Of a stretch of DNA of 64,000 nt, positions 27,751-49,884 are shown piece after piece. The stretch comes from Mytilus trossulus (taxonomy: Eukaryota): positions 10,292,001 through 10,356,000 of the forward strand of contig NC_086384.1 of assembly GCF_036588685.1 (NCBI RefSeq). The letters are read 5' to 3'. The position numbers were made by a program, and so were the translations under genes. How positions within the stretch are numbered: position 1 is the stretch's first letter; each line of letters opens with the position of its first letter. The notes under the pieces were generated by a model that saw nothing but the letters and a program-made list of their open reading frames with translations, had not been told where the DNA came from and searched no databases.

Positions 27751-30700
27751 TAAAATGGATTAAAAATGTTGCGCTAAAATTGCAATTAATAATTCTACTT
27801 TTCGCTAAAATCGGTGAAATAGGTTGCGCTAAACTAGGTTTAACTTTGTGGTCAAAACCTCCATTTTTTGCGCTAAAAAGTCCTCCATCGTGAATTTAAG
27901 AACACTGTCATGAGACTTTAATTGACTCCTAAACAGACCAGCTTATAAATTGTCTATGATGCATCGATCATTAAATTGTTCCGAAATTATTATTTTTTTA
28001 GCTGAAAGTAAAATACATTTCGGGTTAGAAAGGGACCGTTACAATTATTGGTATTCTTTCAATCTTCTTAAACATTTTTCTTTCAACATTTTTTTCCTTA
28101 CTTTGCATATCAAAGTAACGCAAAACTACCGTTTATGGTGTTCAATATTATACTAATGCAACAATAATTTGATGAATTAAAGTTATTTGTTATAGACCAT
28201 TTGCATACTCGGAAATCCGAAAAAGTCAATAATATGACTTTATTGCGTAGTACACTTGTACGCGATAAAACCTATTACTACGCAGTTTTATTTATTTGTG
28301 TAAATACAGGTTACCTTTGTGCACTTATCGTCGGATTTATAATCCTTGTGAATCGTTATAAATATGACATCTTCAAACAAACCTTTTGGGAGAGCTGTGA
28401 AGGGTGCCCTTTTCATATTTTTTGTACTTCACCAATTGATTCCGGAATATTTCAATATATTTAGATATGTGCATTAGGCATGTTAGGTAAGTCCTTTTAC
28501 ACATATTATATGATATATGGATAAAGTGATTGATAATGTTTGTTTCAATAACTAAAACTGAATACTATATAATTATACGCTCGGTATTTTTTGTAATCCT
28601 GTTTGCTGCAGTCAATTAAGAGTGACTAGGACGTTGAGAAATTAGTAATTAACTGATCAAACCACTATAAAATCAAAAATGGTTTCTTGATATTCAAGAT
28701 GTCTCTTGGTTTTAAAAATCATTACTTTTAATTTTATATTGAAAAAAAAATGATAAATTAACTAATATATTACTTCAAAAGGTTTAATTTAACAGTAACA
28801 ATTATTATTATTATTATTATTTGATATTTAATTATAATGGTATGTAATATTTCATTATTGTTTTCAATTTTAAATTATTTTAGCTTTGAAATTGTACTTT
28901 GGAATTAATTACCTCGACGTTTTGTATATTAAATGAACAGCGAATTTCTTCATATTCTAGTTGTCAATCGATCCCGGCCTGCCTACACATCGACAGCAAT
29001 GCCATGCACCATCCTAGGCATTGTCATAGCTAGTTTCCCCATCATGTTAAGACCCAGAACCAGCTCTCACAGATGTAGTTCGTCTGTTGAGAGTCTGTCG
29101 GGAATCAACGACTAACTTCACAATATACCAACAATCTATATACCATTCATATGTATAGCAATGTCGTCTTTTTTTTGGGTTAAAATATATGGTGGAGGAC
29201 CCGGGCAAATATCTGTCAGAATACTAGGTGTTTACTACCTTTGTATGTAAATTGTTAAAATAGAGGAAATTATTATCATATTATTTTTGCTGATGAAGAT
29301 AAACATAGTGGAATTTTATTCAGCAAACTATCACATATGACAACGAATAACATTTTGAAGAATAACAAAGGAATTCAAATACTGACTGCAGGCCATATTA
29401 TTTGTTTTAACTTAGACCATCCTATGACACCTATATGTATGTATCCTAACGATATAAAACCCAAATTTAGGACACATATCTTAGAAGACTTTGTTTAAAT
29501 TGTTTTACATTTGTCTTATCGGCGCCTTATATAGCTGACTATGCGGAATGGACTTTGCTCTTTGTTGAAGGCCGTACGGTGACCTATAGTTGTTAATGTC
29601 TGTGTCATTTTGGTCTTTTGTGGATAGTTGTCTCATTGGCAATCATATCACATCTTTTTTTTATATTTGGTAAATTTAACCATCAAAACACTAATTTGCT
29701 ATTTCGTGGCGGTCAGTTTTTGTTGATCAAGGTAGTGGTAGAAACAATACTAGTCAATTATGATTAGATTTGAGTGCATCTGCACCGTGCTGGAACTTAA
29801 ATGAAAGAGTGCATCCAGTCAGTACTATTAAAAAAAAATAAACAAAAATTGGGGGATAAAAACAATCCTCCACTCCGCCGATTTTTCTTACTTTTCATTT
29901 CTAAAAAGCTGTTTGGTTTCTTATTTCGCCCCAATATCGTAGACTCGGTCTATTTATAGTTTTTCATACAAAGGAGCAAAGAACGCTCGTTTCATTTATG
30001 TAATAATACGTAACTTACTACGTAAGATTGACAACGTGTCAAGAAATGAGATCTTTACATTTAATCAAACGGTAAAGCTTTTCTCTCCTTTGAATATATA
30101 TACAAGAAAGACAAACAAGTATGAATCAAGCGTGTTCGTGTGATATAATTTGTCAATACAAGTGAGATTTATAACAGAATGCACCTTTAAAGGGATAAAC
30201 CGAGTTGAAAATGTTACGTAATTAATGTCAGATTAAATTGTCAGATCATACAAAACACCTCATCTTTTAAATCGTTTTGAAATCAGACATAAGTCAATAT
30301 GAATTAGCGTGCACAGGATAGCACGTTTGCTGATTGATCAAGGTTATTTAATTAATATATAATTAGACAGAGGTATCAATTAGAATATTTTGTACTCTTC
30401 TGCGTTCTTTTTGTTAACGCACCCTTTTGTCGTCATTAAGATGTTCGAATGTTGTTCGTTATGTTGCGGAGGTTGGATCGTCCTTCATTTGACATTGTCT
30501 GGTATCGATCGATCGATAGAAGAGCTGATTCTAAACCTTAACTTTCTCACGTAATCCTTCCGTTCATTTCACTGTTGTGTATAAAATACTGTCCAGTATC
30601 GTATAAAGCCGTTTACAGTGTCACCGACATTTCAACACAGAAATATTGATAACAGCTAAAATCTTGCTATATTTACTCTATACAAATACTAGTTATAAAT

Positions 30701-30764: not shown

Positions 30765-33488
30765 ATGACAAAAATTAAAGTGTTTGTGACTAGGAGAATA
30801 CCCCAACCTGGACTTAATATACTACAACAGGATTGTGATGTACAGTTCTGGGACAGCGATGAAGCCATTCCACAAGAAGAACTTCTCAAGAGAGTACATG
30901 GAGTTGGAGCTTTGTTGTGCATGCTGACTGATAAAATTGATGAAGAAGTTCTAGCAAAAGCAGGTAAATATACATATTTTATTTACTTGTGAAGATTTTT
31001 ATGCCTCTTTTTTTTAACTTTTCGATCAGAATTGTAATATTTGTAGATAATATTATATTCATGTAAAGTCTGCTTTTGAATTCACTTGCAAAATCGCCAT
31101 GCAATCGCAGAAGCTGCTTTGGATCTTTCAACTGCTTTAGAATATAAATAACAAACTTTGCCGGCGACAATTAGGATTTGACTGTCCAAGATATGCGTTG
31201 GTTCCCTTTCGTGTCGTGTAAATTTTAACTGCGACGATGTATATGTTTTCATTTTTAAAAGCAGACATTTCGTAGCTGGTTTTATTTGAAATAATTCGAA
31301 ATAAATAAGCTTCATTTCAAGTACTTTTCAAGTTACGACAAACACTTTTACTTCATTTTTTTTTGGTGATTATTTAGATCAAAATTCGGGAAAAGGGGGG
31401 ATTGATGTATCTTAAAAATTCGTTTACTTGATTCAAAACTTAACAATATTGTAGAAAGATTAGTGCTGATTTGGCAATAAATATAAGAAGTTAGTGCATA
31501 TGTCAGACCCATGCATCTTACATAATTGTATTGATTTTGTTTAATATAAATGATGAATGACATCAACATTCAAATCTTCAATGGGAGCAGTGCAATAGCA
31601 ATCCACTTTATCTGGTTTTAAAATTCAATGTGAGTTTTAAATCTAACAAAATAAAAAAAATGAAATATATCGGAAAAAAAGTGCACATCAAAAACTATTT
31701 TTGCAGTGTAAGGGAAATAATCCCGATAGGACTCATAACAAATACTTGAAATAGGCTCTTTTTAATAGGTGAAAACCTGTGTATTAACACATATGCTCCT
31801 TTTAATAGGTGAAAACCTGCGTATTAACAAATATACTCTTTTTAATAGGTGAAAACCTGCGTATTGTATCCACAATGTCAGTAGGATATGAGCACATAGA
31901 TCTTGAAGCTTGTAAAAGGAGAGGGATAGCTGTTACAAACACTCCAAATGTGTCAACTGATAGTGTGTCAGAACTAACGGTGTCTCTTCTACTGCTGGTG
32001 GCCAGAAGACTATATGAAGGTACATGTAGATTTAAAATTAGTCTTGAGTTAGATATATCATAAAGTAGAGATGTTAAGTTATAAATAGTAATTGCTCAAC
32101 TTGATAAGTTACATGCATGCTTGTGCAAATGCTACCCACTTTTAAGCTATGTTCATGCTCTATAATTCAACATTTTTTGTTACAGCAATGTTTTGCTAAT
32201 GAATATTTTAAAGAAAATGAACAATAATCCGGTATAATTATTTGAACATGAGAATAATTGGAAAGTTCAGCTCCGACATTCCACACAAATAAAATGACAA
32301 ACAATTCATCCAAACTTCAATCTAATTAAAATATAGATCTCTGACTTTGTTATACTGCGTTATACTCATATGTAGTGTAACGAAATCAGAGATCTATATT
32401 TTAATTAGATTGTCCATTCTCAGAAATGATTATTATTAAAACCTTAAGAGAGCTCAACATAAATGTAGTTAACGAACACCAAGTAGTTTTCTTGGATTTC
32501 AATGAAATTGTTTGAAAACAAGACTTATTCGTATAAGAATTTCAGCTCATATCAAGTTGAGAGAAACTCAAAACGTCATAGCAAACCCCCACCCCCAAAC
32601 AAAAACACCACGAAAATAGAAACAAACCCACAAAAGCACAACTTAGAACAATACAGATAGTGCAACACAAACCTTACCAAAACCAGGAGATGATCTCAAA
32701 TGCTTCGAAAGGGTAAACGGATACTGCTACTCATTTGGCGCATGTTGAAAGGACCAGTTTGGCTGACCATGTCAATATGTGCTTTTTATCATATCATTAC
32801 AAATGCTATTGGTATATGCACAAAGACCCCTTTCCGTTAAATAATATACATATGCATCCATTGTATTTCAGGAATACGTGCAGTACACGGAGGAGAATGG
32901 GGTAAATGGAAGCCTATGTGGCTGTGTGGAGTAGAATTAACAAACAAAACAGTCGGAATCCTCGGACTTGGTCGTATAGGATACGGGGTGGCCAAACGAC
33001 TAAAACCTTTCGGAATTGATAGAATTATTTACCATGATGTCTGCAGAGTCAGTTATGCTGATGATATTGGCGCTACATATGTAGATTTTGCCATGTTGTT
33101 GAGCGATTCTGATATCATATGTATATGTTGTAATTTAACTCCACAAACAAAGCACAAGTTTAATACGAAGGCTTTCGAAAAGATGAAGAATAGCGCAGTG
33201 TTGATTAATTCCGGGAGAGGGGGAGTAATCCAACATGATGACCTATATGAAGCATTACGTACAAACACTATTGCTGCTGCCGGATTGGATGTCACTGAAC
33301 CGGAACCACTTCCTAAAGATCATCCGTTATTGACATTAAACAACTGTATTGTTCTCCCTCATATGGGTAGTAATACATGGGAATCAAGAAACAGTATGTC
33401 GGAAATTGCTGCGACTAATATTATTTCTGTTTTAAATGGTACGAATGCAGTAGGTGAAGTTATTCCTCCGCGTAGTAATGGTCTATGA
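30765..33488 (+). CDS. GRHPR: Glyoxylate/hydroxypyruvate reductase-like (D-2-hydroxyacid dehydrogenase) paralogue 3; exons 30765-30963, 31849-32019, 32872-33488; 328 aa
   Basis: 987-nt spliced frame; TMSVGYEHID, WKPMWLCG, GLGRIG, NSGRG, AGLDVTEPEP and LPHMGS intact. Confidence 0.93.
31756..31865 (+). repeat. 40-bp tandem triplication of the exon-2 splice acceptor of paralogue 3
   Basis: ctc(t/c)ttttaatag|gtgaaaacctg(t/c)gtatt occurs three times, with AG at 31767-68, 31807-08 and 31847-48. Confidence 0.92.
32318..32412. repeat. 95-bp fold-back (palindromic) element in intron 2 of paralogue 3
   Basis: caatctaattaaaatatagatctctga / tcagagatctatattttaattagattg; decayed relative at about 13733-13800. 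Confidence 0.8.
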
Positions 33489-36163
33489 TTAAAAAATAGA
33501 ATGACAGCAACACGAGATCGCTTTGTTATATATTTTTTTTATCGTTAATTGTTCCCGATTATCGATATATTTGTAAACGAAACAGTAAAGCATAATATAT
33601 GGTTGATGTTGTAATTTGATTTCTTCGTTTTTGTTGAAAATAGTCTATGTTGGTCAAGTTGAAGGTTAACATCATTAAAGTTAAGTTGTTTCTGATGATT
33701 TCTTTATCTAAATAAAAAAAGGAGCAAAAGGCGAAATTTTCTTTTCAATATTAAAAAGAAGATGTGGTATGATTGCCAATGAGACAACTATTCACAAAAG
33801 ACCAAAATGACACAGAAATTAACAACTACAGGTCACCGTACGGCCTTCAATAATGAGCAAAGCCCATACCGCATAGTAAGCTATAAAAGACTCCTATAAG
33901 ACAATGTAAAACAATTCAAACGAGAAAACTAACGGCCTTATTTATGTAAAAAAAATGAACGAAAAATTATCATATGTACCAATTGAAAATTCAATCTGAA
34001 CATACATGTAAACTAAATGTGGTTAATTCATCCAGTCTTTCGGAATATACTGCTTATGTTTCTTTTGACGCTAAAATCGGAAAAAACACATTATTTTGTA
34101 CTGACTTTTACTACACCCTCCGAAGGTATTAAATTGTATTTTGTACTTTATTTTTTCCATATAAACTATTGTCTGATTCTGATATTGCATTCTTGCTCGT
34201 AAACGCGAAGACGATCGAATTATTCTACATTCATTGTCAATTTGGGAATAATGGAAAGTAAAAGAGAGGCGAAAGATACCGAAGGGACATTCAAACTCAT
34301 AAGTCGAAATAAACTGACAACTTCATCTCTAAAAAAGAAAAAAAAAACAACAAACAAATGATAGCCCCTTCCTTATACAATAATAGCAGAAGCTACTCGA
34401 TAGTTGTTATTATAAGAAAATCCCGAAGGTACTATACTCAAACTCATAAATCGAGAATAAACTGACAACAGAATGGCAAAAAAATCAAAAAACAACAAAC
34501 AACGACAAAACAACATTTCTATAGCAGTAAACTTACAAAATATTGACTTAGCAACATCTTTCAATCATGCACGCTAGCACCGTAGATGATCTCAGGTGCG
34601 CAGGTAGGGCTAGCAGATACTGCTGAACAGATGAAACACAATTATTGATTTTGAAAGTCTTGCACCGTGGTTGTTTTTTTCTGTGAAAAAAAAATTGAAG
34701 TACGGTATTCAGTAATAGTGCTGAAATGCATTGAATCAGGAGACAAAAACAGTATGTTATTATATTCCTGACAATTATAAAACAGTCAACTGTCTTGAAA
34801 AAAATGAGATGTTACATATTATAACATATTGCATCTGTGGCGTGACCAATTTTCTATAATTGCTTAAATCGTTAAAAAATCTGCATTAAGGAAAAATAAA
34901 CGCGTATCATTTTACACAAACCGAGCCGCTCGAGATATGGTGAAGCATTTTGATGTTTTGAAACTGGTAAAGGGTATCAGTTTAAAGCAGGAAACCAGTG
35001 ATTGATTGGAAATGATTCTACAATATGTATCGTTGTCTTGAGCTAGCTTAATACATGTATTTTATTGGAATGATTTTTTTTGTATAGGCCGCATGTGAGA
35101 TCTTTCTTTTCAAAATATAAGACTATGTCATACATGTACATTGAGAAACTAAAGATATAGGTTATTTATCATCCATGACACACAATCAGTACATACACAG
35201 TACAAAACACATTAAAAGTACAGCTCTTATTATTTCTGTTCTGTAACTCAAAACCACCATGAGGCCTTCAACACGAGGAGCAAAAAAGAACTCTCACATC
35301 GCTGGTAGTTTAAGACGACACCAAGCTATTTGAGCGGAATTCTTTGTAAAATAATTCGGGGAGATGTTTCACCACAAAATCATGCAATGTCAAAGATATC
35401 ATACTGGAAAGTAGTACATAGCTTACATCATGTACATTAAGCTAAAGTATCTTCTTTTTGAAAAGAGTATATAACTTAAAAGGTCATTGTCTTAGCAAAA
35501 AGAAAAGCCCCGCTTACTAGAACACAAAAATACAGAACACCAAAATCCAAAAGCAGCATAATAATTAATAAACCATAAGATGCAAGGACTGATTATTGTT
35601 TGAATAACAACTCACAATAAATTACCCTTAATGATAACATGGATAACTTCGAAAATATAAATATTATTTTAACATCCTGTCTCATTTTAAATGCACTTTC
35701 AAGATATGCAAATATATATTTTTTTAAAAATTTTATGGGAATGCTGATAAACTCTAAGTCATTTTGTTTACGATTAATGTGTTTTACAAATTAAAATATC
35801 CACATGTATACATCACAATCACGTCCCTCATCAACTACGTTCAATTTATAAAAACTACATAATTGTGAATGTGTGCTTATCAATACTATTTAATTCGAAA
35901 CCTTGATTTAAATGCAAAATCGAAATTTGTGAAAAACAATGTAGGTTTTATCATCAACAATTCATGTAATTTTAATAGTTAAATGTTAATAGCTTTGATG
36001 ACGAATTATTTATTCATTATTGATGAATTTATATATGTTATCTAAATGATACTATCTGCCCCTATTTTCATTATTGTCTAAGGCAGTCTATTATATTTTG
36101 CTCGTTATAAGTCATGATTATTGGAAAACTGAATATATTTAGTTAGATCCTATGATACCAATT

Positions 36164-36333
36164 CAGGGGCGGATCCAGCCATTTTAAAGAGGGGGGGGGG
36201 TCCCCAACCCAGGATTAAAGGGAGGGTTCAACTATATGTCCCCATTCAAATGCATTGATCGACCAAAAAAAAAGGGGGATTCAAACCCCCGGAACCCCCC
36301 CCCCCCTTTTCCCCCTTTCTGGATCCGCCACTG
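36164..36333. mobile_element. MITE with cag(g/t)ggcggatccag TIRs (hAT-like termini), present in copy 1 only
   Basis: caggggcggatccag / ctggatccgccactg; empty site near 45015 in copy 2. Confidence 0.8.
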
Positions 36334-36668
36334 CATTGAATACCATGATAACAGTTAAACATAAATCTGTGACAAGTTATCCAGCGAATCTTCTCCTCTA
36401 GGACAATTAATATCATAGAAAGATCAAATTAGATGTCATTTTACAAGTATTTCGAATAAATATTATCAACGAGAGAGAGATTAAAATGCTGTATTTCCAT
36501 AAAATCAAATCATTTAATTCCACCGTAATTCCTTGTGGTAATAATCTCCATAGAAATATGCATTGGCAAAGTCCGTCCTGGGAAATGTAGTTGATTGATA
36601 CAAGTGTTCAATAGCTATGAGCATTTGACATTCCATTTAGTATCAGAGAAGATTCAGATATCAATAAA

Positions 36669-39600
36669 ATGGCAGAAGATAAGTAAGTATTGTTTGTTGA
36701 TCATTTATTTCTAATTTTGTAATTTTGTCATATTCCTGGTAACAATTCTAAAAAGGTATCATTTACAGTGTAACTTTATCGGCATTATAATGATGTACAC
36801 CACGTATATTTTTCAATTTCTTCGAAAAACACATGTCGAATTGGATTCAGTTACACAGAGTTAAATGCATTTTAATATGCGTCTCTTTGTGCTGAATCAA
36901 ATATTGTAGCGAAAATTTGATCGGAGACGTCGCATCCGTACACATTGAACCAAACGGTCAGCCTCAATGAAAGAATAATATATGTTCGCACAGAGGATAT
37001 GTTCCAATCCCCAACTGTAACCTACCGAATTAGACTTATCACCGGGTGTGTACTACCACGAACAGCACGATGGATGCCACATGTGGAGCAGGATCTGTAT
37101 ACTCCCATAGCACTTGAGATCATTTCCAGTTTTGGTGGGTTCATGTTGATCAGTAATTTGTGGGTTCATGTTGTGAATTGTGTAATGTTCAACTGCTTGT
37201 TTTTTGTTATTTTTTGTTCGACAACCTTCTATCAATATATCAAGGGATACAGACTACCAATTTTCACATTCTATAAAGTGAAGGATGTTGGTTATTGCTA
37301 AGTTAATAGCTCTCGGTGTATGGGTTAAAAAATGAGATTCGACGATACCAATAGACAAATAAATAAACAGCTTTAATTAAACTAATTTGTAGTACACTGA
37401 ATTTGGAAATACTTGAACTTTTCAGAACGTTTATAGAGGGAGAGTCGTGGACAAAATCATGCAAACGACAGGAAACAGAAAATACAAACAATTGTAAGTT
37501 TTAAAAACCACAAAAAAACATTAGAGCAAACAGAAACCGAACGACAATGAAATACCGGGTATTACGGTAGTGTAGTAGAAACGGAAATGTGATATAAAAC
37601 ATAATTGTTAAAGAAAATATCAATTTTCATATTATAGTATATATTTGGTCCTACATGGAAACCATGTATCTTTAAAAAAGATATCCGACGTATTTAGATT
37701 TGAGTATTATGTTTAAAACTATCATTTCGATAACCTTCAGAAGCACAATGACTTAATGATGCAGGACCTGTTTGATAAAATCTCCATCTGAATGTTACTG
37801 CAAGAATTTTTTTTTACTAAGTCTGTTTATATTAAAGGCAATAATATATAAGAATATTGTGATGACACCTAAAAATTTTATTGGTAAAAAATCTAGTGCA
37901 AATAAAAAGAAACTAATATACATTTACTACTGTTAACATTAAGCTTAATTTATGGTTATCAAAGCTAGAAACTATTGGTAGTATGCATGTAAGTAGTATC
38001 TTTCTGTTTACATTCACCCAAACCCCGCGGAAATCGCACATGCGTAGGTGCGTTCTAAAAGTCATGTACGTTCGTACAAAAAAGTTTACATTAAAAATTA
38101 TATAATTATATAATTGTCCCGAATAAACAGCTTTCGTGGATGCAAAGAACTATTGGAGAAACAATTATTTTAATAAAAATATAAATCTTTGTAAGATCTA
38201 GTTCAAATATTTATAATTTATCACTTGCTTTCCATCACGATATAATTTTCGAGACGATTTTTCAAACACAAACAAATCACCCACAATGATGGCATTTTGT
38301 CCAATCACAGAAAGGATTTTCGAGCATGCGTAGTCTGTTGCCATAGTGAAGCGTCCTTAAGTTCAAAGTGCACAAACCGAAACTATACCGACTACGTCGG
38401 AAAAAGAGATACCGTGTACGCGATAGAAATCATAAATTGAATTGCAACTTCAAGTACAGATACTTGCTATACTGTAATTTTAAACATTTACGATTGCTAT
38501 ATTCAAAGATTAGAAAAAAATGAAAAATTAATCATTGCGATTTTAGGAAAATATGAAAAAATCGAGGGTGATCTTAAGTGTTAAGGAAAGGTAGGCTAAT
38601 CCTGCTCTACAGGCTAACAGTTATACTCATGATGTTGAACTCTCGATCTTTTTTTCTGATTGAAATTGATTGTGTATACCGACATGCTTATCTGTACATG
38701 TATTTAAGTTTATATAAGCTAAACTATGTGTATTGGTTTTTTTTATACTTTGCACTTATGCAATCTGCATTATTTTGCTGAATTATAACACGAAGATGTT
38801 GTACGATTGCCATTGCGATAACTCTTCATAATTGATCAAAATGACACAGAAATTACTTAATAGAGGTCAACAATGAGCAAGGCCAATACTGTATGGCCCG
38901 AAATGACAAATATAAAACAATCTAAACTAGAAAAACTAACGGCTTAATTAATGTACAATGTAATGAACTAAAAACAAATATGTCACACAGCAACAACGAA
39001 TACCACTGGAATTCTGCAACAGGCTCCTGACTTAAGCCAGACACATACAGAATGTTTCGATTTTAACATCTTAGTTGGTAAAAAAACGAAAAACGATAAA
39101 CAAAAACGAACAAAAGCCACCAAAGCACGTGAAATGAGCAATACACTCCTCGTTAATAGAAAGTGATGATTTAAATTTCTCAAGATGAGTTGGAGACCAA
39201 GGGAGGTAACCCGGACAAGGACAATGATTGTGAAAAGGACGAAAAGAACGGATGTGATGAAGATAAGGACAATGCAGATGAAGAAGAGGAAGACAATGAT
39301 TGTGACTGGATGACGAAAGAAGAGGAAGAAAGAAAAATTATACAATGTGTAAGATTTTCAAATGTTCAAGTTAAGGATCTACTTACATGAGGTTTATAAA
39401 CTTGATTTTCGGATTTTTTTCTCTCCATACAATACAGGGTGAATGATTTTGCTCGTTAACACCCACTACACTAACACAACATTTTCGTGTATCTTCTACT
39501 TGACTGGGTTAAATAGAAGTAATATCAGAGGGCTCCCAACTTCATCTACATTTTGAACTTCTTTACTTTTAATGCAAATACTGCGGACAATATCTAATGC

Positions 39601-40256
39601 GTAATTCATACAGAATTCCGTATGTAACATGTCTGTTTTGTATCTGAACCTTATTTAGTGGTTGTAGTTGGTTGTTTTCTGTCATAGTTAATTTGCGTTT
39701 AGGTCATAGAATAAGCCATTGCTTATTTTTCTATTCGATCGTTTCACATTATGTCATGTAGTGGTCCTTTTAATGGATTATGTCATGTAGTGGTCCTTTT
39801 AGCTGAATTTGAGGGGTTTGTCGATTGTTGAAGGCCTCACGGTGACATACAATTACTTATATCTAAGTCATTTGATGTCTGGTTAGTACACGTATAGCTG
39901 TTCATTGGGCAATCATTACACATCTACTACATAAATCATACTTAGAAAAATATTCTAGAACATTCACATAAATATATTTATAACTGATATTTGTTTGTTT
40001 TACCTTGAACAATATCACGTGGTATTTTTCTTTTCTATAAAATTTTCGTTTGCAGCTGCAGGAAGTTGCAAGTAGATGTACTCATGCTAATACGAAGAAA
40101 AGACCCACATCTTATGAAGTACTCGATATGTTATATAAAGTATACGAACCACCAAAAGAACCATGGTCGTTCAAAAGTTTCTGTCAGAATCTATGTCAGG
40201 CAGAAAACTACGAAGATTATGACGACTCCACGCTGGACACACCGGTATCAAAATAA
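36669..40256 (+). CDS. Predicted 148-aa acidic protein ending in an IRAK/Pelle-like kinase subdomain X-XI remnant, copy 1; exons 36669-36682, 37426-37493, 39185-39348, 40056-40256
   Basis: Donors gtaagt, gtaagt, gtaaga; acceptors ttttcag, tttctcaag, tttgcag; phases 2/1/0 give one 447-nt frame: MAEDKTFIEGESWTKSCKRQETENTNNYELETKGG...DCDWMTKEEEERKIIQCLQEVASRCTHANTKKRPTSYEVLDML...VSK. Confidence 0.65.
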
Positions 40257-40648
40257 ATAAACGTCATCAAGGTTAAGACGCTTCAAAGTGTGTTGATAAC
40301 ATGGCTTCGCTTTTTCTTTAAATTACAAACAATAAATCCAATATGCATAGTAGAACACATTTATCTGCACATTCAAAGAGTTTGAACTGCTTATTGTAAC
40401 TCTGTTTGTTAAATAAATACATTTTTTAAGGATTAACTTTGGATTTATTTCTTTAGGTGATAGGTAATTTCAGATTCTCGTCCAGTGACGAATATCAAAA
40501 TTTATATTTTGATGTGAATATGTAAAAATGATATGAATGGAAACCCCGTTTTACTAGATAGATATTGGGTCAAAAATGTCAGTGTTGAAGACATCCCAAA
40601 TCTCCTTTGCCATGGGGAAATTGAATGTCAACAATGATCTAAATATAA

Positions 40649-41218
40649 CGCACAAACAAAGGAAAGGTCGCAGTTTCGTGGCAGATAGAAGGAAAGACCA
40701 AACAGAATAATGCATGATTCGCATAAACAAAGAAAAGGTCGCAGTTTCGTGGCACATAGAAGGAAAGACCAACCAGAATAATGCATGATTCGCATAAACA
40801 AAGGAAAGGTCGCAGTTTCGTGGCACATAGAAGGAAAGGCCAACCAGAATAATGCATGAATCGCATAAACAAAGGAAAGGTCGTAGTTTCGTGGCACATA
40901 GAAGGAAAGACCAACCAGAATAATGCATGAATCGCATAAACAAAGGAAAGGTCGTAGTTTCGTGGCACATAAAAGGAAAGACCAAACAGAATAATGCATG
41001 ATTCGCATAAACAAAGGAAAGGTCGCAGTTTCGTGGCACATAGAAGGAAAGACCAACCAGAATAATGCATGATTCGCATAAACAAAGGAAAGGTCGCAGT
41101 TTCGTGGCACATAGAAGGAAAGGCCAACCAGAATAATGCATGAATCGCATAAACAAAGGAAAGGTCGTAGTTTCGTGGCACATAGAAGGAAAGGCCAACC
41201 AGAATAATGCATGATTCG
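40649..41218. repeat. 60-bp minisatellite, about 9.5 copies
   Basis: Unit cgcataaacaaaggaaaggtcgcagtttcgtggcacatagaaggaaagaccaaccagaataatgcatgatt-like, repeating at a 60-bp period; explains three periodic minus-strand ORFs. Confidence 0.97.
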
Positions 41219-42218
41219 AATCATTTATTCATATAAAACATCGTTCATTGTAATCTTTTGACGAGGGGAAACAATAACAGCTCTTAACAATAATAGCATA
41301 AATGTGGGACAATATGTCTTATCAACAAGCAAAGTGGTTTTGAAATTTACATATAAGACGGCTGTACATCTGTAAAACTGTATATAAACTGTTGATAGCA
41401 TTACACAAGATGCAGTGGAAGAATCTATATGTTTAATTTTATACAGATTTAAAAATGTACAATTAATGTGCATGTTTACAGAGTTGCATTTTATATACAG
41501 CTTAACAGCTTTACAGTTAACATACAGGTTTACATTTGTACAGTGTATAAATATTTACAGCTTTACAGATGTGAATTTAAATTCATCTTGAGAACTGTAC
41601 ATCAAGATTGCTTGTACATAAGAAGCTGGGTCGTCTGATATCGTCCATGATAGGTATTAAATGATGACCTGATCATTCAACTGATTTTTTATTGTTTGGT
41701 CTTGTGTTGTGCTGTAGCACCAGTCCCGGTTTTGGGGAAGACTTAACACACATCCACATGTTTAACCAAGCTATAAGTAATGCACTGGTGCCAAGTCAAG
41801 CGACGGTAGTTCAGTGGTGATAACTGGTTTACGTCTGTCATATATATATATTTTTCGTAAATTGTTTTGTTATAAATAACGCCATCAGTTTTCGAAATTT
41901 ATTGCTAAAAAAAGGTGTTTACGCATATTTTATCAAGCTATAATCTAGATTTCGTTATTCATTAGTTGACCATTTATTGAATTTGTCAACACTTAAAGGT
42001 AAAAAATCTCAAATTTTATAAAGAAAATTAAGCATGTATTCTTCTTTTTGTGGTTTAAAGTTTCTCTAGACAAGTAAGATGATGAAAAATATAATATACA
42101 GATATAAAAAATACCAAATTTTCACATTATGTTTTCAAAATGGTCACAAAGTCTCAAATTTGCAATTTCTTTAAAGTCATAAGAATAGTTATCAAAAGTA
42201 CCAGGATTATAATTTTAT

Positions 42219-42262
42219 ACGCCAGACGCGCGTTTCGTCTACATAAGACTCATCAGTGACGC
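42219..42262 (-). ncRNA. Minimal type I hammerhead ribozyme; predicted cleavage between 42225 and 42224
   Basis: GCGUCA-CUGAUGA-GUCU(UAUGU)AGAC-GAAA-C(GCGC)G-UC^UGGCGU: full core, 4-bp stem II, palindromic stem III, 6-bp stem I. Confidence 0.88.
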
Positions 42263-42573
42263 TCAGATCAAAATAGTTAAAAAGCCAAACAAATACAAAG
42301 TTGAAGAGCATTGAGGACCCAAAATTCCAAAAAGTTGTGCCAAATACGGCTAAGGTAATCTACTCCTGGGGTAAGAAAATCCTTAGTTTTTCGAATAATT
42401 CAAAGTTTTGTAAACAGAAAATTTATAAAAATGACCATATAATTGATATTCATGTCAACACCGAAGTGCTGACTAGGGGGCTGGTGATACCCTCGGGGAC
42501 GAAACGTTCACCAGCAGTGGCATCGACCCAGTGGTGTAAATAGTTATCAAAAGTACCAGGATTATAATTTTAT

Positions 42574-42617
42574 ACGCCAGACGCGCGTTTCGTCTACATA
42601 AGACTCATCAGTGACGC
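42574..42617 (-). ncRNA. Minimal type I hammerhead ribozyme; predicted cleavage between 42580 and 42579
   Basis: Identical to 42219-42262. Confidence 0.88.
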
Positions 42618-43179
42618 TCAGATCAAAATAGTTAAAAAGCCAAACAAATACAAAGTTGAAGAGCATTGAGGACCCAAAATTCCAAAAATTTGTATAGAAG
42701 GGGGTCTGAAATCGAATGTAAACAAAAATCTATCCCATCCTGGAATTTTAATTGATTGATTGATTGTTGGTTGCTTAACGTTCAGGGGTAAATATTTCAT
42801 GCATATTCATGACGATGTATCAAAATAATCAAACTTTGCAACCTAAAATCGTAACTCTATATGATCACAGTAAATAAGGGTGTACACGTATTATTTAAGG
42901 AACTTTAGGTCACAAAACAGACGACAATATGAGCTTAACTATTTCACAGATCTGCTTATATTTATAATATTTGAACAAGAATATTGCTTTTAGGGCTCAT
43001 AACATAATTATCTTCAGAACAAAATACAAGTTCAGCTTTGTGTCATACTCAAAATGGTTTAATTCTTACTTTCAGATGACATGGTATTGTAAATAGAGTT
43101 ATCCGTGTGTTTCATATTGATTCGTAATTAAAATTGAATTTATTTTTTATCATTTGATTTGAAACTTATTATATTTAAA

Positions 43180-43330
43180 ATATTGTACAAGTTATAAGTG
43201 AAATTTAGCCTTATTTTGTACAAATTATAATGTGTACAGACACTTTTTGTACAAATTACAATTTGTACAAAGTCAAAATACAAATTATAATTTGTACAAT
43301 TTTTTTGTACAAAATGATAACTTGTACACA
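43180..43330. repeat. Irregular array of TTGTACAA/TGTACA palindromes
   Basis: About 8 occurrences at 15-35 bp spacing. Confidence 0.7.
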
Positions 43331-43774
43331 ACATATACATGCATTGGTTCAAGAATTGGATAAATATTATTTTCACCACTCACTCGTTTCATATGACTTT
43401 AATGAAAAATGCACACACAAAAAAAAACCTACCCATAACACTTCGGTTTTGTACATTTCATGAGAAGAAGATTAATATATAATTTTGTCTTATACCAACC
43501 CATCAATTATCATATTTTACATAAATTTCAAGAAAATCAACCAAAAACTGACCCCAAAAAAACCACTCATTTTTACGGAGTTATCTCACCCTTCCAATGA
43601 TAATTGCCATAGGAAATTAAAAATGCTGATTTTGAGTTTTCCTCAAGTTTGGTTTTATGGGATTTTTTTCTGTGTATGTAAAGAGCATACTGCTATATAT
43701 TAGAAATAAAACATGTTCTGTTGCATTAGTTTAGTTTGACTTATAGCTTTTATGAGGAATTACTTTATTCATTA

Positions 43775-44130
43775 ATAAATAAATTTGGTGTTTTTATTGT
43801 CTTCTGATTGGTTAAAATTATTAGTTTTATTTTCAATGTTGTCATTTTTTATGGCGACACGCCCACTCTGACGTTGTGTATTCATACGCCAACATGTGTG
43901 TACGTTGTTATTGTTTTTATAAATAATATAAAAAGTTCTTTGAGCCTTCTTTTTGATAGAAATTTATTTATAATGAATGGCAATAATCTATTTTGATTTT
44001 ATTGAACCACAAAACTAATTTTTGACTCTTCACATTTTACATAATCCGCTTTGCGGATTATTTCATGTGAAGAGTCAAAAATTAGTTTTATGGTTCAATA
44101 AATTCAAAATAGATAATAGCCATTCATTAA
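43775..44130. mobile_element. Insertion specific to copy 2, ending in a roughly 160-bp hairpin (43971-44129)
   Basis: taatgaatgg...ataatccgc-ttt-gcggattat...ccattcatta; absent at the orthologous site near 36015. Confidence 0.7.
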
Positions 44131-44157
44131 ATGCTGAGTTTATATATATTAACAATA

Positions 44158-44899
44158 CTAGAACACACCCGTGATATCGCGGGTCCGTGACTGAATTAAA
44201 GTATGTTACTATGCGCAAGACTTATTTTTGTATTAGTATTGTCATCTGATAAAGTCATGCCGATTATAAGATAGTTATCACAGTTTTCTCTGCTTTCAAA
44301 TCTTTCTGTTTGAACCCATCTAACTGAAACTTATCAATTATTGGTAATATTAATTATTTGGAAAACAAAAGGTCGGGGGATGGAGTATTTTTTAATCAAC
44401 AGCATTGTCCTATTTTAGTTATAAATGAAGTTGAATTCTTTGATTCGCTGTTTTACGTCATGCCCGCTAAAAAATTGAAAACTGTACCTATACGCCTTGT
44501 TTTTAGTATTCGTATTGTTATCTTATAAAGTCTTACTGATTAAAATACTACAATAGGTAACAATTTGACAATTTAGTAGTGTCAATCCTGTGATTATGAC
44601 CCGAGTATATAGCATATCCTGAATACACCGTTTGGTGGTGCGCCTGTCAAATGCAGAACGTGCAGATGAGGTAATAGGTAACAGATGATTCTACTATTGG
44701 TATCGGTATCGGACTCGACCCGGAACTTCTTAATTATTGGCAATATTAATTACGTGGAAAACAAAAGGGCCTGGAGTGGTGTAATTTTTAATCTACACCT
44801 TTGTACTATATTAGTTATATATAAAGTTGAATTCTTTGATTCGTCGTTTTTACGTGATGACGGCTGACAAATTGGACCTCGTAATTTAAGTATTATAGA
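44158..44899 (-). mobile_element. Non-autonomous Helitron
   Basis: Minus strand has 5'-TC, a subterminal hairpin acccg(c)gatatc(a)cgggt and 3'-CTAG; inserted between A and T; empty site near 36047; internal duplication at about 44330-44460 and 44730-44860. Confidence 0.85.
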
Positions 44900-45302
44900 T
44901 GATACTATCTGCCCCAATTATTGTCATTATTGAATTAGGCAGTCTATTCTGTTTTGCTCTTTATAAGTCCTGATTATTAGAAAACTGAATATCTTTAGTT
45001 AGATCCAACGATACTACATTGAATCCCGGTGTTGAATGCCCTAACAGGTAAACATAAATTTATGACCAGTTATCCAGCGATTCTTTCCTGTAGAACAATA
45101 AATATCACAGAAAAATCAAATTAGTTGTCATTTTACAAGAATTTCGAATAAATATTGTCAATGAGAGAGAGAGAGAGAGAGAGATTAAAATGTTGCATTT
45201 ACATAAAATTAAATTAAATTCCATCGAAATTCCTTGTGGTAATCTACAATTTGATCACAAGTTTATATTACCATAGAAATATTCATTGGTAAAGTTCGTC
45301 TA

Positions 45303-45316
45303 GGGAAATGAAACTG
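45303..45316 (+). promoter_or_regulatory. ISRE/IRF-like element GGGAAATGAAACTG upstream of the copy-2 mini-gene
   Basis: GAAA-N-GAAACT motif about 75 bp upstream of the ATG at 45392. Confidence 0.35.
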
Positions 45317-45391
45317 ATTGATACAAGCGTTCAATAGCTTTGAGCATTTGACATTCCATTTAGTATCAACAAAGTTTCCGATATCAATAAA

Positions 45392-48300
45392 ATGGCAGAA
45401 AATAAGTAAGTAATGTTTGTTGATCATTTATTTCTAATTTTGTAAATTTTGTCATATTCCTGGTAAAAATTCTGAAAAGTTATCATTTGCAGTGTGATAT
45501 TATCAATATTATAATGACAAACACCATGTGTATCTTCCAACTTCTTAAAAAAGCACATGTCGAATGGGATTCAGTTAAATGCATTTTAAAATGTGTCTCT
45601 TTGTGCTGATTCAAATGTTGTACTGAACATTGATATCTGAGACGTCGCTCCACAAATCCGTTCATATGAAACCAAACGGTCAGCCTCAATGAAAGAATAA
45701 TATATGTTAGCTCAGATGATTACGGATATGTTTCAATTGTTGTGACTGCAGTTCTATCCCCATTCCCTCGACTGTAACCTAGCTACCGAATAAGACTTAT
45801 CACCGGGTGTGTACTACCACGAACATCACGATGGATGCCACATGTGGAGCAGTATCTGTATACTCCCAAAACACTTGAGATCACCTCCAGTTTTAAGTGG
45901 GTTCATGTTGATCAGTAATTTGTTTTCTTTGTTGTGTGTTGTGTAATGTGCATCTGCTTTTTTTAAATTTTTTATTCGACGCCCAACTATCAATACGTCA
46001 AAGGATACAGACTACCAATTATCACATTCTATAAATTGAAGGATTTTGGTTCTTGCTAAGTTAATGGCACTCGTTGTATGGGTTCAAATTTAAAAAAAAA
46101 GGGAATTAAACGATTCCTTTAAACAAGAAAGTAGTTTAGGTATCTATAAATAAACTTAATTATTGTTCTCTAAATTTTGAAATGCTTGAAACTTTTCAGA
46201 ACGTCTATAGGGGAAGAGTCGTTAACAAAATCATGCATACGACAGGAAACAGAAAATGCAGAGAATTGTAAGTTTTAAAAAGCAAAAAAAAACAACAATA
46301 AAACAAACAAAAACCGAACGAAAATGAAATAACGGTTAACAGTCATGTAGTAGAAACGGAAATGTGATATAAAATATAATTGTTAAGGAAAAAATGAATT
46401 TTCATATTATAGTAAATATTTGGTCCTTCGTGGAAAAAAGAGTTACCGTGTACGCGATAGAAATCATAAATTGAACTGCAACTTCAAGTACAGATACTTT
46501 CTATACTGTAATTTTAACAATTCTGCGTATATTTACGATTGCGATATTCATAGATTTGAAAAAATGAGAAATTAATCATTGCGATTTTAGGAAAATAGAA
46601 AACAGATCGAGGTTGATCTTAAGTGTTTAGGAAAGGTAGGCTGATCCTGCTCTACAGGCTAACAGTGATACTCATGATGAATAACTCTAAATCTTTTTTC
46701 TGATTGAAATTGATTGTGTATATTACCGACATGCTTATCTGTACATGTATTTAAGTTTATATAAGCTAAACTATGTGTATTGTTTTTTTTTAATACTTTG
46801 CACTTATGCAATCTGCATTGTTTTGCTAAATTATAACAACGAAGATGTGGTTTAATTACCAATCAGATAACTATTCATAAGAGACCAAATGATACAGAAA
46901 TTACTCAAAATAGGTCAACAATGATCAAAGCCAATAATGTATAGTCATCTATATAAGGCCCCGAAATGACAAATGTAAAACAATCTAAACTAGAAAAACC
47001 AACGGCGTATTGATGTACAATGTAATGAACTAAAAACAAATATGTCACACAGCAACAACAAAAACCACTGAGTTTCTGCAACAGGCTCCTGACTTGAGCC
47101 AGGCACCTACAGAATGTGGCGGGTTAAACATCTTAGTTGGTACAAAACGAAAAAAAACGAAAACGAAACAAAAGTCAACAAAGCACGTGAGACTGAGCAA
47201 CCAATCCTCGTTAATAGAAAGTGATGATTTTATTTCTCAAGATGAGTTGGAGACCAAGGGATGTAACCAAGACAAGGACAATGATTGTGAGAAGGACGAA
47301 AAGAACGGATGTGATGAAGATAAGGAAAATGTAGACGACGAAGAGGAAGACAATGATTGTGACTGGATGACGAAAGAAGAGGAAGAAAGAAAAATTATAC
47401 AATGTGTAAGATTTTCTAATGTCCAAATTAAGGATCTATTTACATGAGGTTTATGAACATGAGTCCGATGTTCGGACTCCTTGTTTTTCCCTTCATACAA
47501 TACATGGTGGATTATTTTGCTCGTTAACACCCACTACATTGAAACCACATCTTCCTGTATCTTCTACTTGACTGGGTTAAAAAGTAGTAATATCAGAGAG
47601 CTCCCAACTTCATCTACATTTTGAACTTCTTTACTTTTCATGCAAATACTGCGGACAACATCTTAGTGCATAATTCATAAAGAATTCCGTATGTAACATG
47701 TCTGTTTTGTATCTAATAGGCGAGTGACACTTTCAAAAAAGACGCTTAGTTAGTGACTTTAATGCACCCACCTAACACACAGCTGAATTATTTGTATATC
47801 TTATAGAATAATATCTGAACTTCGGTCGTAAAAAATCGTACGGTGCAATTTTTGTAAAAATTGAATCAAAATCGAGAAAAGATTCCAAATTAAAAAATGA
47901 CCAACAGTTTTGAAGCGTGAAAAATTAACATGTAGCTTTATTTTCTGTTGTCACAATTCAAAAATTATGTACGTTTAACATGTCAATGTATAAAAAATAC
48001 TTTTCAAAAATAACCGAAGTAATTTTTGCGAGAAAAAAAAAAGATTTTTGTAACATTTTTGATTATTTTTATAAAAATGGTGGCAATTTTCATATTTTTC
48101 TTCATTTCCTAGATATTTTCGGCATAAAACCCAAATTAATGATGTTCGTTTTATTCAAAAGTTCATTACTCATTTAATAAATATTGTTATCACTCTATTA
48201 TTCTGGATTTCATACATTTTTACACACTCCCCCTTTTCAATCAAATTTCCGAAATCGCGTTCTCTGTTAGTTTCCCTCAAGTAAACGAACCGAAACTCTT

Positions 48301-49442
48301 CGAAAAAGAATATGAATAACCATGAAGGCACTTTTTTCTATACAAATATTGGGCAAAGTATTAAAAAAAAATCAAAGGACCATAGAAGATGTTATGTCAA
48401 CGTTTTTTTAGTCTTGGTAGAAAACCTATATCTTATTATTCTTATTCATTTTGCACTTACAAAAGGCAGAGATGATTATGAATAACTAATGAAAAATACT
48501 TTTTTCTCAATTGATCAATGCTCATTTTCGTTTTGCAACTAAAAGTACGCATAAATGTGTCATTCTGATATTTTCCCGATGAACTTGAACGTAAGATATG
48601 TCCACTTTTTAAATTTTCTACCGTTTTAACCATCGCATACGGTAGGCTTATTGATAAATTAAGTAGAATCATATTCAAAACAGTGTGGTCCTGGCCATTG
48701 ATTGACGACCTAAATTATCCCAGTGAATGGGACAGATTAGGTGAACGTTTGTCGGTAACAATCACTGCTCACTATGTACTTGTTAAAGACACTGAATCTG
48801 TGGGGTCACCAAAGGTTCTAAACACCTAAATAAAGCAATTCGAAAAAAGAATCCGGAATAATACGATGTGTTGATTTATATCAATAATATAAATCAAAAC
48901 ATAAAGGTTATTCCTGAATAATTTTTTGAATAATTATATTATCAAAGGCGTTAAGAACCTTTGGTGAACCCACAGTTTAAATTCTATAATAAGTAAGAAG
49001 TGCGCAATGGTCGTTACAGACAAACGTTCACCTAATCTGTCCCAGTCAATGGGATAATTTAGGTCGTCAATCAATGGCCAGGACCACACTGTTTTGAATA
49101 TGATTCTATGTAACATGTCTGTTTTGTATCTAGAACATTAACATACATATATTAATAACTGATATTTGTTTGTTTTAACCTTGTACAGTATAATAACGTG
49201 TTATTTTTTCTTTCTATAATTTATAATTTTTCATTTTGCAGCTGCAGGAAGTTGCCAGTAGATGTACTCATGCTAATCCAAAGAAAAGACCCACATCTTA
49301 TGAAGTACTCGATATGTTATATAAAGTATACGAACCACCAAAAGAACCATGGTCGTTTAAAAGTTTCTGTCAGAATCTATGTCAGGCAGAAAACTACGAA
49401 GATTGTGAGGACTCCACGCTAGACACACCGTTACCAAGATAA
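45392..49442 (+). CDS. Predicted 148-aa acidic kinase-tail protein, copy 2; exons 45392-45405, 46200-46267, 47242-47405, 49242-49442
   Basis: Same exon lengths (14/68/164/201), splice sites and phases as copy 1, with no indel or stop: MAENKTSIGEESLTKSCIRQ...DWMTKEEEERKIIQCLQEVASRCTHANPKKRPTSYEVLDML...LPR. Confidence 0.65.
48664..49108. mobile_element. Fold-back MITE with about 160-bp TIRs, inside a copy-2-specific insertion (47716-49106)
   Basis: tagaatcatattcaaaacagtgtggtcctggccattg... is mirrored at 48945-49108. Confidence 0.85.
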
Positions 49443-49884
49443 ATAAACGTTAACAAGGTGGAGACATTTCAAAGTTTGTTGATATAACATGGTATCGCTT
49501 CTTCTTCAAATGGCAAACAATGAATTTTATATACAAAGTAGAATACACTTATCTGCACATTCAAAGAGTTTTAACTGCTTATGGTACTTTTATTTGCATT
49601 CTATACCACATCTTCTTTTTTTATATCATTGTTATTGACCTATGCATGTTTTTTATTTTGGCTCCGTTCGTAGCTACATGTACCATCATTCCACATTCAC
49701 ATGCCTTTTTTAAGTAATAATATCCCGATCCTCTACCTGAGTCTGATGAAACATTTTTTGTTGTATTACAGTATAAAACAACGAGTGATTGATCAAAACT
49801 AAAACATGTAAAATGTAACCAACAATTTATGGTGGCCGGATGCGGACAGTTCGCCTTTTCTCGTTTTCTCTTTTCACTTTCACG

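Follow-up and report, generated by a model that had tools for sequence, protein, structure and literature searches.

A window of 64,000 nucleotides from the mussel Mytilus trossulus (contig NC_086384.1, positions 10,292,001 to 10,356,000, forward strand) contains a tandem pair of short, four-exon genes, located between positions 36669 and 49442 of the window and called copy 1 and copy 2 in the following. The pair is lineage-specific, and both members are real, spliced, protein-coding genes. Their 148-residue products are composed of a fast-evolving N-terminal third, an acidic tract and a strongly conserved C-terminal part (residues 65-136), which includes a module matching the end of the protein kinase domain. 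Judging from sequence likeness, they belong to an unnamed family of small proteins. The reading as a whole, according to which a real gene pair encodes members of a small-protein family that carry a kinase-tail module and would work as non-catalytic, binding microproteins, is held with slightly better than even confidence; within it, the mode of action is far less certain than the identity of the genes and of the family. The features which define the pair are reported below, in window coordinates.

36043..40398, + strand: duplication unit 1, the copy 1 gene with its flanks, from blastn blocks against unit 2
36669..36682, + strand: copy 1 exon 1, with the ATG, coding for MAED plus 2 nt, GT donor at 36683, from the RefSeq model and splice sites
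37426..37493, + strand: copy 1 exon 2, joined to exon 3 in contigs
39185..39348, + strand: copy 1 exon 3, coding for the acidic tract and the beginning of the conserved helix, contig joints on both sides
39316..39348, + strand: first segment of the kinase-tail-like module in copy 1 (residues 72-82), a helix that aligns with helix H of kinases
40056..40256, + strand: coding part of copy 1 exon 4, with the stop codon; contigs continue to about 40391-40408 (3' untranslated region)
40056..40142, + strand: copy 1 residues 83-111, the C..(N/D)P.KRPT loop and the second helix, similar to kinase subdomain XI
44896..49586, + strand: duplication unit 2, the copy 2 gene with its flanks, from blastn blocks against unit 1
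45392..45405, + strand: copy 2 exon 1, from the RefSeq model and splice sites
46200..46267, + strand: copy 2 exon 2
47242..47405, + strand: copy 2 exon 3
49242..49442, + strand: copy 2 exon 4, with the stop codon; module residues 83-111 at 49242-49328; best of 1229 open frames in a search with a kinase hidden Markov model (HMM)

An earlier note, drawn from the letters of the window, had described a duplicated mini-gene at this place, and its account of the exons was confirmed in detail. Exon lengths are 14, 68, 164 and 201 nt in both copies, with AG before and GT after each internal boundary. The copies are identical at 13/14, 59/68, 156/164 and 191/201 letters of the four exons, with no indels in any of them, and the differences previously counted by hand in exons 3 and 4 (8/164 and 10/201) were recovered exactly. 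All nine differences in exon 2 had been said to change the encoded amino acids: seven codons differ there, and 7/7 are altered. The AAG acceptor of exon 3, earlier listed as a caveat, is real and is used in spliced contigs. Introns and flanks have diverged with many indels, as described, since the blastn blocks show identities of 79.6-87.6% and contain 3-124 gap columns each.

The unbroken 148-aa frame proposed for the joined exons corresponds, for copy 1, letter for letter to the RefSeq protein XP_063409873.1 (LOC134693097), and copy 2 is XP_063409610.1 (LOC134692908). RefSeq thus already models both copies as 148-aa "uncharacterized proteins", an annotation which the earlier note had missed. 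These entries were first reached by a search with the natural open frame around copy 2 exon 3; the full-length query sequences used throughout are the database proteins, not hand-joined exons. Exon translations start at residues 1, 6, 29 and 83 of both proteins, at the expected places in 8/8 cases. No signal peptide is found in either of them. M. galloprovincialis, M. edulis and M. californianus have orthologous RefSeq models of 148, 146 and 154 aa, respectively; the name attached to the M. edulis model, 'capping protein inhibiting regulator of actin dynamics-like', is judged to be a low-complexity artefact. Searches of the 1.30-Gb M. trossulus assembly with the exon-4 peptide and with a Mytilus profile revealed that the unit is present in two copies only. 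Both M. trossulus proteins share states absent in the other species, for example Q84 and N127, which suggests that the duplication was lineage-specific or that gene conversion took place.

Transcription was evaluated by aligning contigs of four public runs (X1-X4, from three studies with two organism codes) on positions 36300-40500. The contigs carry no information on expression level. Of the three junctions which the earlier note had listed for checking in copy 1, 39348/40056 is a GT..AG joint in contigs of 4/4 runs, and 37493/39185 is found in the same form in 2/4 runs (X2 and X4, 2 contigs each). For 36682/37426 the outcome was partial: a loose end of just 9-10 nt precedes 37426 in X4, and no full joint is seen. 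Two further contigs, one from X1 (38923-39348 joined to 40056-40391) and one from X3 (starting at 39101), retain 84-262 nt from the end of intron 2, with intron 3 removed; these point to intron retention or to an internal start, and such RNAs could encode the core only, from Met70. One X2 contig carries a different sequence upstream of exon 2, which defines an additional feature.

28458..28486, + strand: possible alternative 5' exon, ending here before a GTAAGT donor (28487); one X2 contig links it to exon 2

In this contig, the 27 letters before exon 2 match the 28458-28486 region exactly, 8.9 kb upstream, and the last ATG of the upstream exon is in frame with exon 2 (MCIRHV-R-TFIEGE...). The sequence suggests an alternative 5' exon, although, given its position among dehydrogenase genes, read-through from a neighbour's promoter may also account for it.

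Contigs from introns also occur in the X1-X4 runs, and therefore unspliced RNA or DNA is present too. These intron contigs, the single contig linking a far upstream exon to exon 2, and the solely non-synonymous change of exon 2 would fit an explanation in which the units represent remains of a pseudogene that are still transcribed, or else the last exons of a longer kinase gene. This is considered very improbable, because open frames are preserved in both copies and across four species, the core has diverged far less than the introns, and family members occur in more than one phylum. As for a longer kinase gene, exon 4 is the sole kinase-like open frame in positions 26000-53000 of the window, the upstream exon ending at 28486 encodes nothing kinase-like, and no match within the window is present among the best 150 of 154 PF07714 matches in the genome (144/979 candidates scored).

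The divergence between the paralogues was then compared along the genes. Aligned intron sites differ at 225/2060 positions (0.109), against 4/216 nt for core residues 65-136, where a single amino acid change (T95P) is found (Fisher p 1.3e-6). Residues 1-64 show 13 non-synonymous and 2 synonymous codon changes. The proportions of non-synonymous (pN) and synonymous (pS) differences are 0.036 and 0.132 in exon 3, and 0.038 and 0.100 in exon 4; when all exons are summed, the corresponding rates are dN 0.059 and dS 0.103, for a ratio of 0.58. A similar distribution is observed among six Mytilus proteins, any two of which are identical at 62-72 of the 72 residues of the core (65-136), and at 37-62 of 61-64 within residues 1-64. 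From these figures it follows that the frame is kept throughout, and that strong purifying selection acts only on the C-terminal half, while for the N-terminal third the rate of change is close to neutral. Together, the RefSeq models, the spliced contigs and the constraint on the core bear out the proposal that these are real genes and not debris.

In order to find relatives outside the genus, the Mytilus profile was run by HMMER, exhaustively, against 1.84 billion representative proteins. Six matches were obtained at E<=0.001, namely the own protein, two repeat proteins and three small proteins having the same layout: a 106-aa protein of Dimorphilus gyrociliatus (E 5.9e-6), also present in a 141-aa neighbour form, a 114-aa protein encoded by a Logan contig of 1198 nt (E 1.9e-5), and a 155-aa protein of Ptychodera flava (E 1.2e-4). 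A word-based search added a 104-aa protein of Capitella teleta, automatically named 'Protein kinase domain-containing' in UniRef, and a 69-aa protein from a Logan contig of 1065 nt, in which the acidic tract is almost nil. No kinase was found at E<=0.001 in the exhaustive search, which places the small proteins nearer to each other than to kinases of any sort; at that database size, family members detect one another at E 1e-4 to 6e-6.

All members share, near the C-terminus, a helix-loop-helix of about 40 residues, (S/T)xEEExx(I/M)LxxLxEVVxxCTxxxPxKRPT(S/A)xEVLxML. Over 11 sequences 12 columns are invariant: E75, E76, L83, C90, T91, K97, R98, P99, T100, V104, L105 and L108, in copy 1 numbering. 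The first helix of the mussel module is interrupted by a phase-0 intron, located between residues 82 and 83. The module is preceded by an acidic tract in Mytilus, Dimorphilus, Ptychodera and one Logan member. The proteins are all shorter than about 160 aa (69-155), with a variable, mostly acidic N-terminal part followed by the invariant module. As far as may be judged by sequence, the mussel genes thus belong to a family represented in four Mytilus species, two annelids, one hemichordate and two Logan-contig proteins. Given the members in annelids and in a hemichordate, an occurrence missed by the earlier note, the family is not a mussel-only invention.

The two repeat proteins (P0006 and P0007) were rejected as relatives, being long proteins whose E values result from summing 20 and 7 weak stretches, respectively. 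The former, encoded by an ENA metagenome contig, is 1302 aa long and is made up of twenty repeats of a unit of about 60 aa containing ETLWKPWAPNKICQCTCKERHYEN; its repeats weakly resemble the Mytilus-specific tail (residues 109-143), with a summed E of 3e-13, a likeness that is probably spurious.

The similarity of the C-terminal helix-loop-helix to kinase subdomains X-XI, put forward in the earlier note, was evaluated by profile comparisons with unselected kinases and against PDB sequences, and was upheld in both. For the former, 12 full-length kinase domains were used, corresponding to the top PF07714 matches of the M. trossulus genome and chosen without regard to the family; they were preferred for the hhalign comparison to two kinase terminal exons (L012 and L013), which are hits picked by similarity. 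The family profile matched the last 33 columns of the 12-kinase alignment with Prob 93.1% and P 3.2e-7, and the Mytilus-only profile gave Prob 85.4% and P 5.9e-6. In a control comparison of the family profile with the three dehydrogenases of the window, values of Prob 0.1% and P 0.5 were obtained.

Against PDB sequences, an 8-sequence family profile produced 72 matches at E<=10, with a best E of 0.0014. The best 60 of these 72 are all kinases or pseudokinases, namely OSR1, SPAK, TOPK, BAK1, SOBIR1, LRRK2 and a maize pseudokinase, as well as MST3, STK25, CDKL2, MLKL, PKR, NEK7 and PAK2. In 57 of these best 60 rows the match is located at the C-terminal end of the kinase domain, as in OSR1 (257-281 of 290); the other three, from PAK2, match elsewhere, with no stretch above threshold. 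An 11-sequence profile gave 64 matches at E<=1, and the best 60 of these 64 are again all kinases. Similarly, in Pfam scans the best weak match of 3/4 distant members falls on positions 222-259 of the 263 in Pkinase, with sub-threshold E values of 0.035-0.086, and distant members match kinase profile positions 219-259 only. The conserved Arg in the C..P..RP turn between the last two helices (subdomain XI) is present.

The same 12 kinases were used to build an HMM, which was run unfiltered against 1229 open frames of at least 15 aa from positions 26000-53000. The two exon-4 frames ranked first, with E 0.057 and 0.084 at HMM positions 236-259 of 261, the next frame having an E of 3.2. No other part of a kinase domain is therefore encoded in or around the units, in agreement with the previous statement that a kinase core is missing from both. 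The statement that no death domain is present also held, none being found among Pfam matches at E<=10 for 5 Mytilus proteins. Single exon translations returned nothing useful from Pfam. Matches of the Mytilus proteins to acidic loops of TTI1_C, Nop14 and CDC45 were rejected as composition effects; the best of the sub-threshold ones is to TTI1_C (E 0.0039, with a cut-off of 27 bits).

A structural model was obtained with AlphaFold2 (AF2) from 11 sequences. The mean predicted local distance difference test score (pLDDT) is 59.7, with values of 77-93 for residues 71-110. Helices are predicted at 72-90, 101-111 and 121-131, with a loop between the first two, and this secondary structure fits kinase helices H-I. 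The N-terminal 70 residues have pLDDT <50, and the acidic tract is taken as probably disordered on the basis of the model. With Foldseek, used against PDB, the 34 rows listed consist of 27 IRAK4 chains, one BRI1, one MAP2K6 and five unrelated chains; for the IRAK4 rows E is 1.2-2.7, over 33-38 columns with 26-30% identity and a root-mean-square deviation (rmsd) of 0.6-1.6. A wide VIA-align search over 48,161 chains found one chain at Z>=5, 6j5t_H (Z 5.1, rmsd 2.6, 45 residues). In a second VIA-align comparison, restricted to Foldseek's top chains, IRAK4 aligned with Z 2.0-2.2 at rmsd above 9. These fold-search results are below significance and were used only as weak leads.

A number of results weigh against the proposed reading. 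No Pfam kinase match is found at E<=10 in 5 Mytilus proteins, and a complete, bilobal kinase domain (PF00069 or PF07714), with glycine loop, VAIK lysine, HRD, DFG and APE, is absent. The Mytilus-only profile has no significant match among PDB sequences, and its three non-significant ones are HIV-2 reverse transcriptase (best E 0.3), CALHM1 and SPAK. The kinase matches of the wider profiles span just 23-38 residues, and none is strong by itself (best E 0.0014, about 22 bits). Searches of the M. trossulus genome with the exon-4 peptide, the Mytilus profile and the wider profile did not find a parent kinase; the last of these also matches two ordinary kinase terminal exons (L012 and L013), at E 0.0018 and 0.17. 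On the structural side, a first AF2 model, based on 5 sequences, had a pLDDT of 45.7 and was not used for fold search; nothing was found by Foldseek at E<=0.001, the best E being 1.2; the VIA-align Z of 5.1 is, according to the tool's own note, within the range often reached by unrelated helical models, and no chain reached Z>=5 when VIA-align was applied to 329 of Foldseek's 348 top chains. Some non-Mytilus members could be fragments of longer models. As to the transcripts, that the four runs are RNA is a presumption, and a guess; they hold the intron contigs mentioned above, and the loose end of 9-10 nt before exon 2 equals the end of copy 2 exon 1.

Some of these results would be expected if the family were real and its kinase likeness convergent or fortuitous, the module being a helical hairpin, with a Pro-x-Lys-Arg-Pro-Thr turn, which was never part of a kinase. 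The shortness of the match, the non-significant structure searches and the failure to find a parent kinase in the genome all speak for such an origin, as does the age of the family, which is too great for tracing descent. Yet every test places the match at the final columns of the domain, the positions which define subdomain XI are included in it, the listed best 60 PDB rows are all kinases or pseudokinases, the profile-profile comparison gives a P of 3e-7 against 0.5 for the control, and the Capitella member was given a kinase name by automatic annotation in UniRef. Convergence is accordingly regarded as unlikely, and descent of the module from a kinase gene is inferred.

Which kinases are closest is a separate question; the module is too short for a tree. 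The earlier note had assigned the tail to the IRAK4/Pelle type; the kinase tail stands, but IRAK is only one possible assignment, as profiles ranked OSR1/SPAK, TOPK, BAK1, SOBIR1, LRRK2 and MLKL first. The order by sequence profile is OSR1/SPAK, of the STE20 group, and TOPK, then BAK1 and SOBIR1, then LRRK2 and MLKL; no IRAK chain is found in the best 60 of 72 rows for the 8-sequence profile, or in the best 60 of 64 for the 11-sequence one. The family ends in EVLxML without a following His-Pro-Phe, which we take to be more like TKL/RLK than STE kinases. The closest ESM Atlas clusters consist of plant receptor kinase fragments from the C-terminus, with scores of 0.90-0.92, a borderline range according to the tool's own note, in which a score of 0.9 is reached by 4-10% of shuffled proteins. 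The closest kinases are probably of the TKL or RLK-Pelle-IRAK sort, or similar.

The earlier note had gone further, suggesting a possible decoy or docking-surface regulator of Toll-like receptor/IRAK signalling, near an immune gene. Put in a specific form, a decoy derived from IRAK4/Pelle would tune this (Myddosome) signalling, and the proximity of an immune helicase gene would be meaningful. In favour of such a role are the IRAK4 chains that make up 27 of the 34 Foldseek rows, along with BRI1, the RLK/Pelle members BAK1 and SOBIR1, found at E 0.004-0.014 in profile searches, and the plant receptor-kinase fragments of the ESM Atlas. The only chain at Z>=5 in VIA-align could be added, as it comes from a plant resistosome complex (residues 303-347 of a 327-residue chain record). 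This complex presumably contains RLK/Pelle-type kinases. The 27 IRAK4 rows represent, however, one protein and not 27 observations, with the E values, Z scores and rmsd given above, and the ESM scores are also reached by shuffled proteins; IRAK is absent among the listed profile rows, where OSR1/SPAK and TOPK come first. No death domain is present in the Pfam scan, the N-terminus consisting of 64 poorly conserved residues. Nothing links the genes to immunity. The helicase/zinc-finger gene, earlier named ZNFX1 and placed about 9 kb away, is more distant than stated, its nearest open frame starting at 60277, 10.8 kb from 49442; Pfam names only AAA_11 and AAA_12 helicase domains in it, and the other neighbours are three 2-hydroxyacid dehydrogenase genes. 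A role of this kind is therefore rather doubtful, somewhat more so than convergence.

Within the preferred reading, that of a kinase-tail microprotein, a protein having no N-lobe, catalytic loop or activation segment would be unable to phosphorylate, and its most likely role would be that of a non-catalytic binding module. In kinases, the C-lobe core provides the packing surface for helices H-I, and a pair is formed by the conserved Arg and the APE-motif Glu; the last helix-loop-helix is not an independent folding unit there. The invariance of L83, C90, V104, L105 and L108, and of K97-R98-P99-T100, is hardly needed for self-folding alone, and from this we infer a partner. The invariant hydrophobic face formed by the first five of these residues would dock onto it, and the partner could plausibly be either a kinase or a protein that binds kinases. 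The acidic tail would have an accessory part, adding charge-based contacts or solubility.

The roles of the two parts might also be reversed, with the acidic disordered tract as the working part, chaperone-like or buffer-like, and the hairpin serving only for folding, oligomerisation or localisation. The tract does precede the module in Mytilus, Dimorphilus, Ptychodera and one Logan member, the weak Pfam matches fall in acidic loops of TTI1_C, Nop14 and CDC45, and the match to TOPK also covers an acidic insert. The tract is nevertheless poorly conserved, changing between the paralogues at about the intron rate (see the codon changes in residues 1-64), and the 69-aa member is nearly without it, so that this possibility appears improbable.

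Compared with known proteins, the module is like the C-terminal end of kinases such as OSR1/SPAK, BAK1, SOBIR1, LRRK2, MLKL and IRAK4 in having a helix, a C-x(3-5)-P-x-(K/R)-R-P-(T/S) turn and a helix with E-V/I-L-x-x-L. Unlike kinases, the family lacks about 230 of the 260 domain positions, and the mussel protein is only 148 aa long. Among the matches listed, TOPK/PBK (PDB 5j0a) is the sole kinase in which the match spans an acidic insert ahead of the last helices (profile positions 40-109, chain residues 230-298, E 0.0026-0.0029), with a score not above that of OSR1/SPAK, to which the acidic stretch contributes little. TOPK, unlike the family, is a complete, active kinase, and a TOPK-like ancestor gene is no more than a lead.

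Non-catalytic modules derived from kinases are known, namely pseudokinases and the KIND domain. KIND keeps the whole kinase C-lobe, about 200 aa, inside large multidomain proteins. The mussel family differs in that it keeps about 40 residues, 33 columns of which align to kinase domains, in a free-standing protein. No KIND family was found in Pfam scans of the Mytilus and distant members. KIND is described as a non-catalytic part of a kinase that has been retained for binding proteins (PMC2064798, PMC5338823, PMC5928657). Similarly, microProteins (miPs) are presented as small, single-domain relatives of larger proteins, which act by binding them (PMC4427850). The family is like miPs in being small (69-155 aa) and in having one conserved module related to part of a large family; unlike it, the miPs described are mostly derived from transcription factors. 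By analogy, the mussel proteins may be miP-like binders of larger relatives. Among the papers listed in searches of open-access full text, no report was found on a free-standing protein having only the last kinase helix-loop-helix, nor any paper mentioning one of six locus names.

The surroundings of the pair contain additional repeated elements and genes. Two differences between the units are located in introns.

37662..38391, no strand: stretch of about 730 nt in copy 1 intron 2, absent from copy 2, with very high contig depth
47716..49132, no strand: insert of 1417 bp in copy 2 intron 3, with perfect 26-nt direct repeats at 47690-47715 and 49107-49132

The first, given its very high contig depth, is probably a repeat element. 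The second holds inverted arms of 131 nt (48659-48789 and 48983-49113), 89% complementary, and looks like a foldback element, or one resembling a miniature inverted-repeat transposable element, with an unusually long duplication. The spacer between the units includes a tandem repeat at 40554-41224, recognisable from three overlapping long open frames on the minus strand with repeated peptide blocks, and a 155-nt direct repeat, 99.4% identical (42184-42338 and 42539-42693).

Upstream of the pair, three paralogous last exons of D-isomer 2-hydroxyacid dehydrogenase genes are arranged in tandem on the + strand (19404-20144, 24880-25416 and 32916-33488), the third matching PF02826 with E 3.7e-52. 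At 1542-2375, on the same strand, a 277-aa open frame is composed almost entirely of repeats of the (K/R)(A/P)PSYN(R/S/K) type; it has no Pfam match and is reminiscent of repetitive mussel structural or adhesive proteins. Elsewhere in the genome, tandem arrays of near-identical, intronless kinase frames of about 270-289 aa were observed, with a spacing of about 1.7-1.9 kb, at C3:16.309-16.365 Mb (at least 30 matches), C4:20.130-20.150 Mb (at least 11) and C1:26.001-26.028 Mb (at least 15). These kinases cover PF07714 positions 47-255, are without the first 46 positions of the profile, and are repeated like a satellite.

For M. trossulus, two RefSeq loci so far "uncharacterized" can now be placed in a family and come with a hypothesis that can be tested. 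Conservation of the module extends over molluscs, annelids and a hemichordate, and the partner of the module could reveal a new form of kinase regulation or a new use of a kinase fragment. In a broader version, considered unlikely, the members would be ancient stand-alone 'kinase-tail' microproteins of protostomes and deuterostomes, acting in trans on kinases of the TKL/IRAK type or on others, by competing for, or providing, the site at which the two final C-lobe helices pack, or by mimicking the docking surface of these helices. If this were true, the family would represent a previously unrecognised layer of kinase regulation, which in mussels has been duplicated and is diversifying at the N-terminus.

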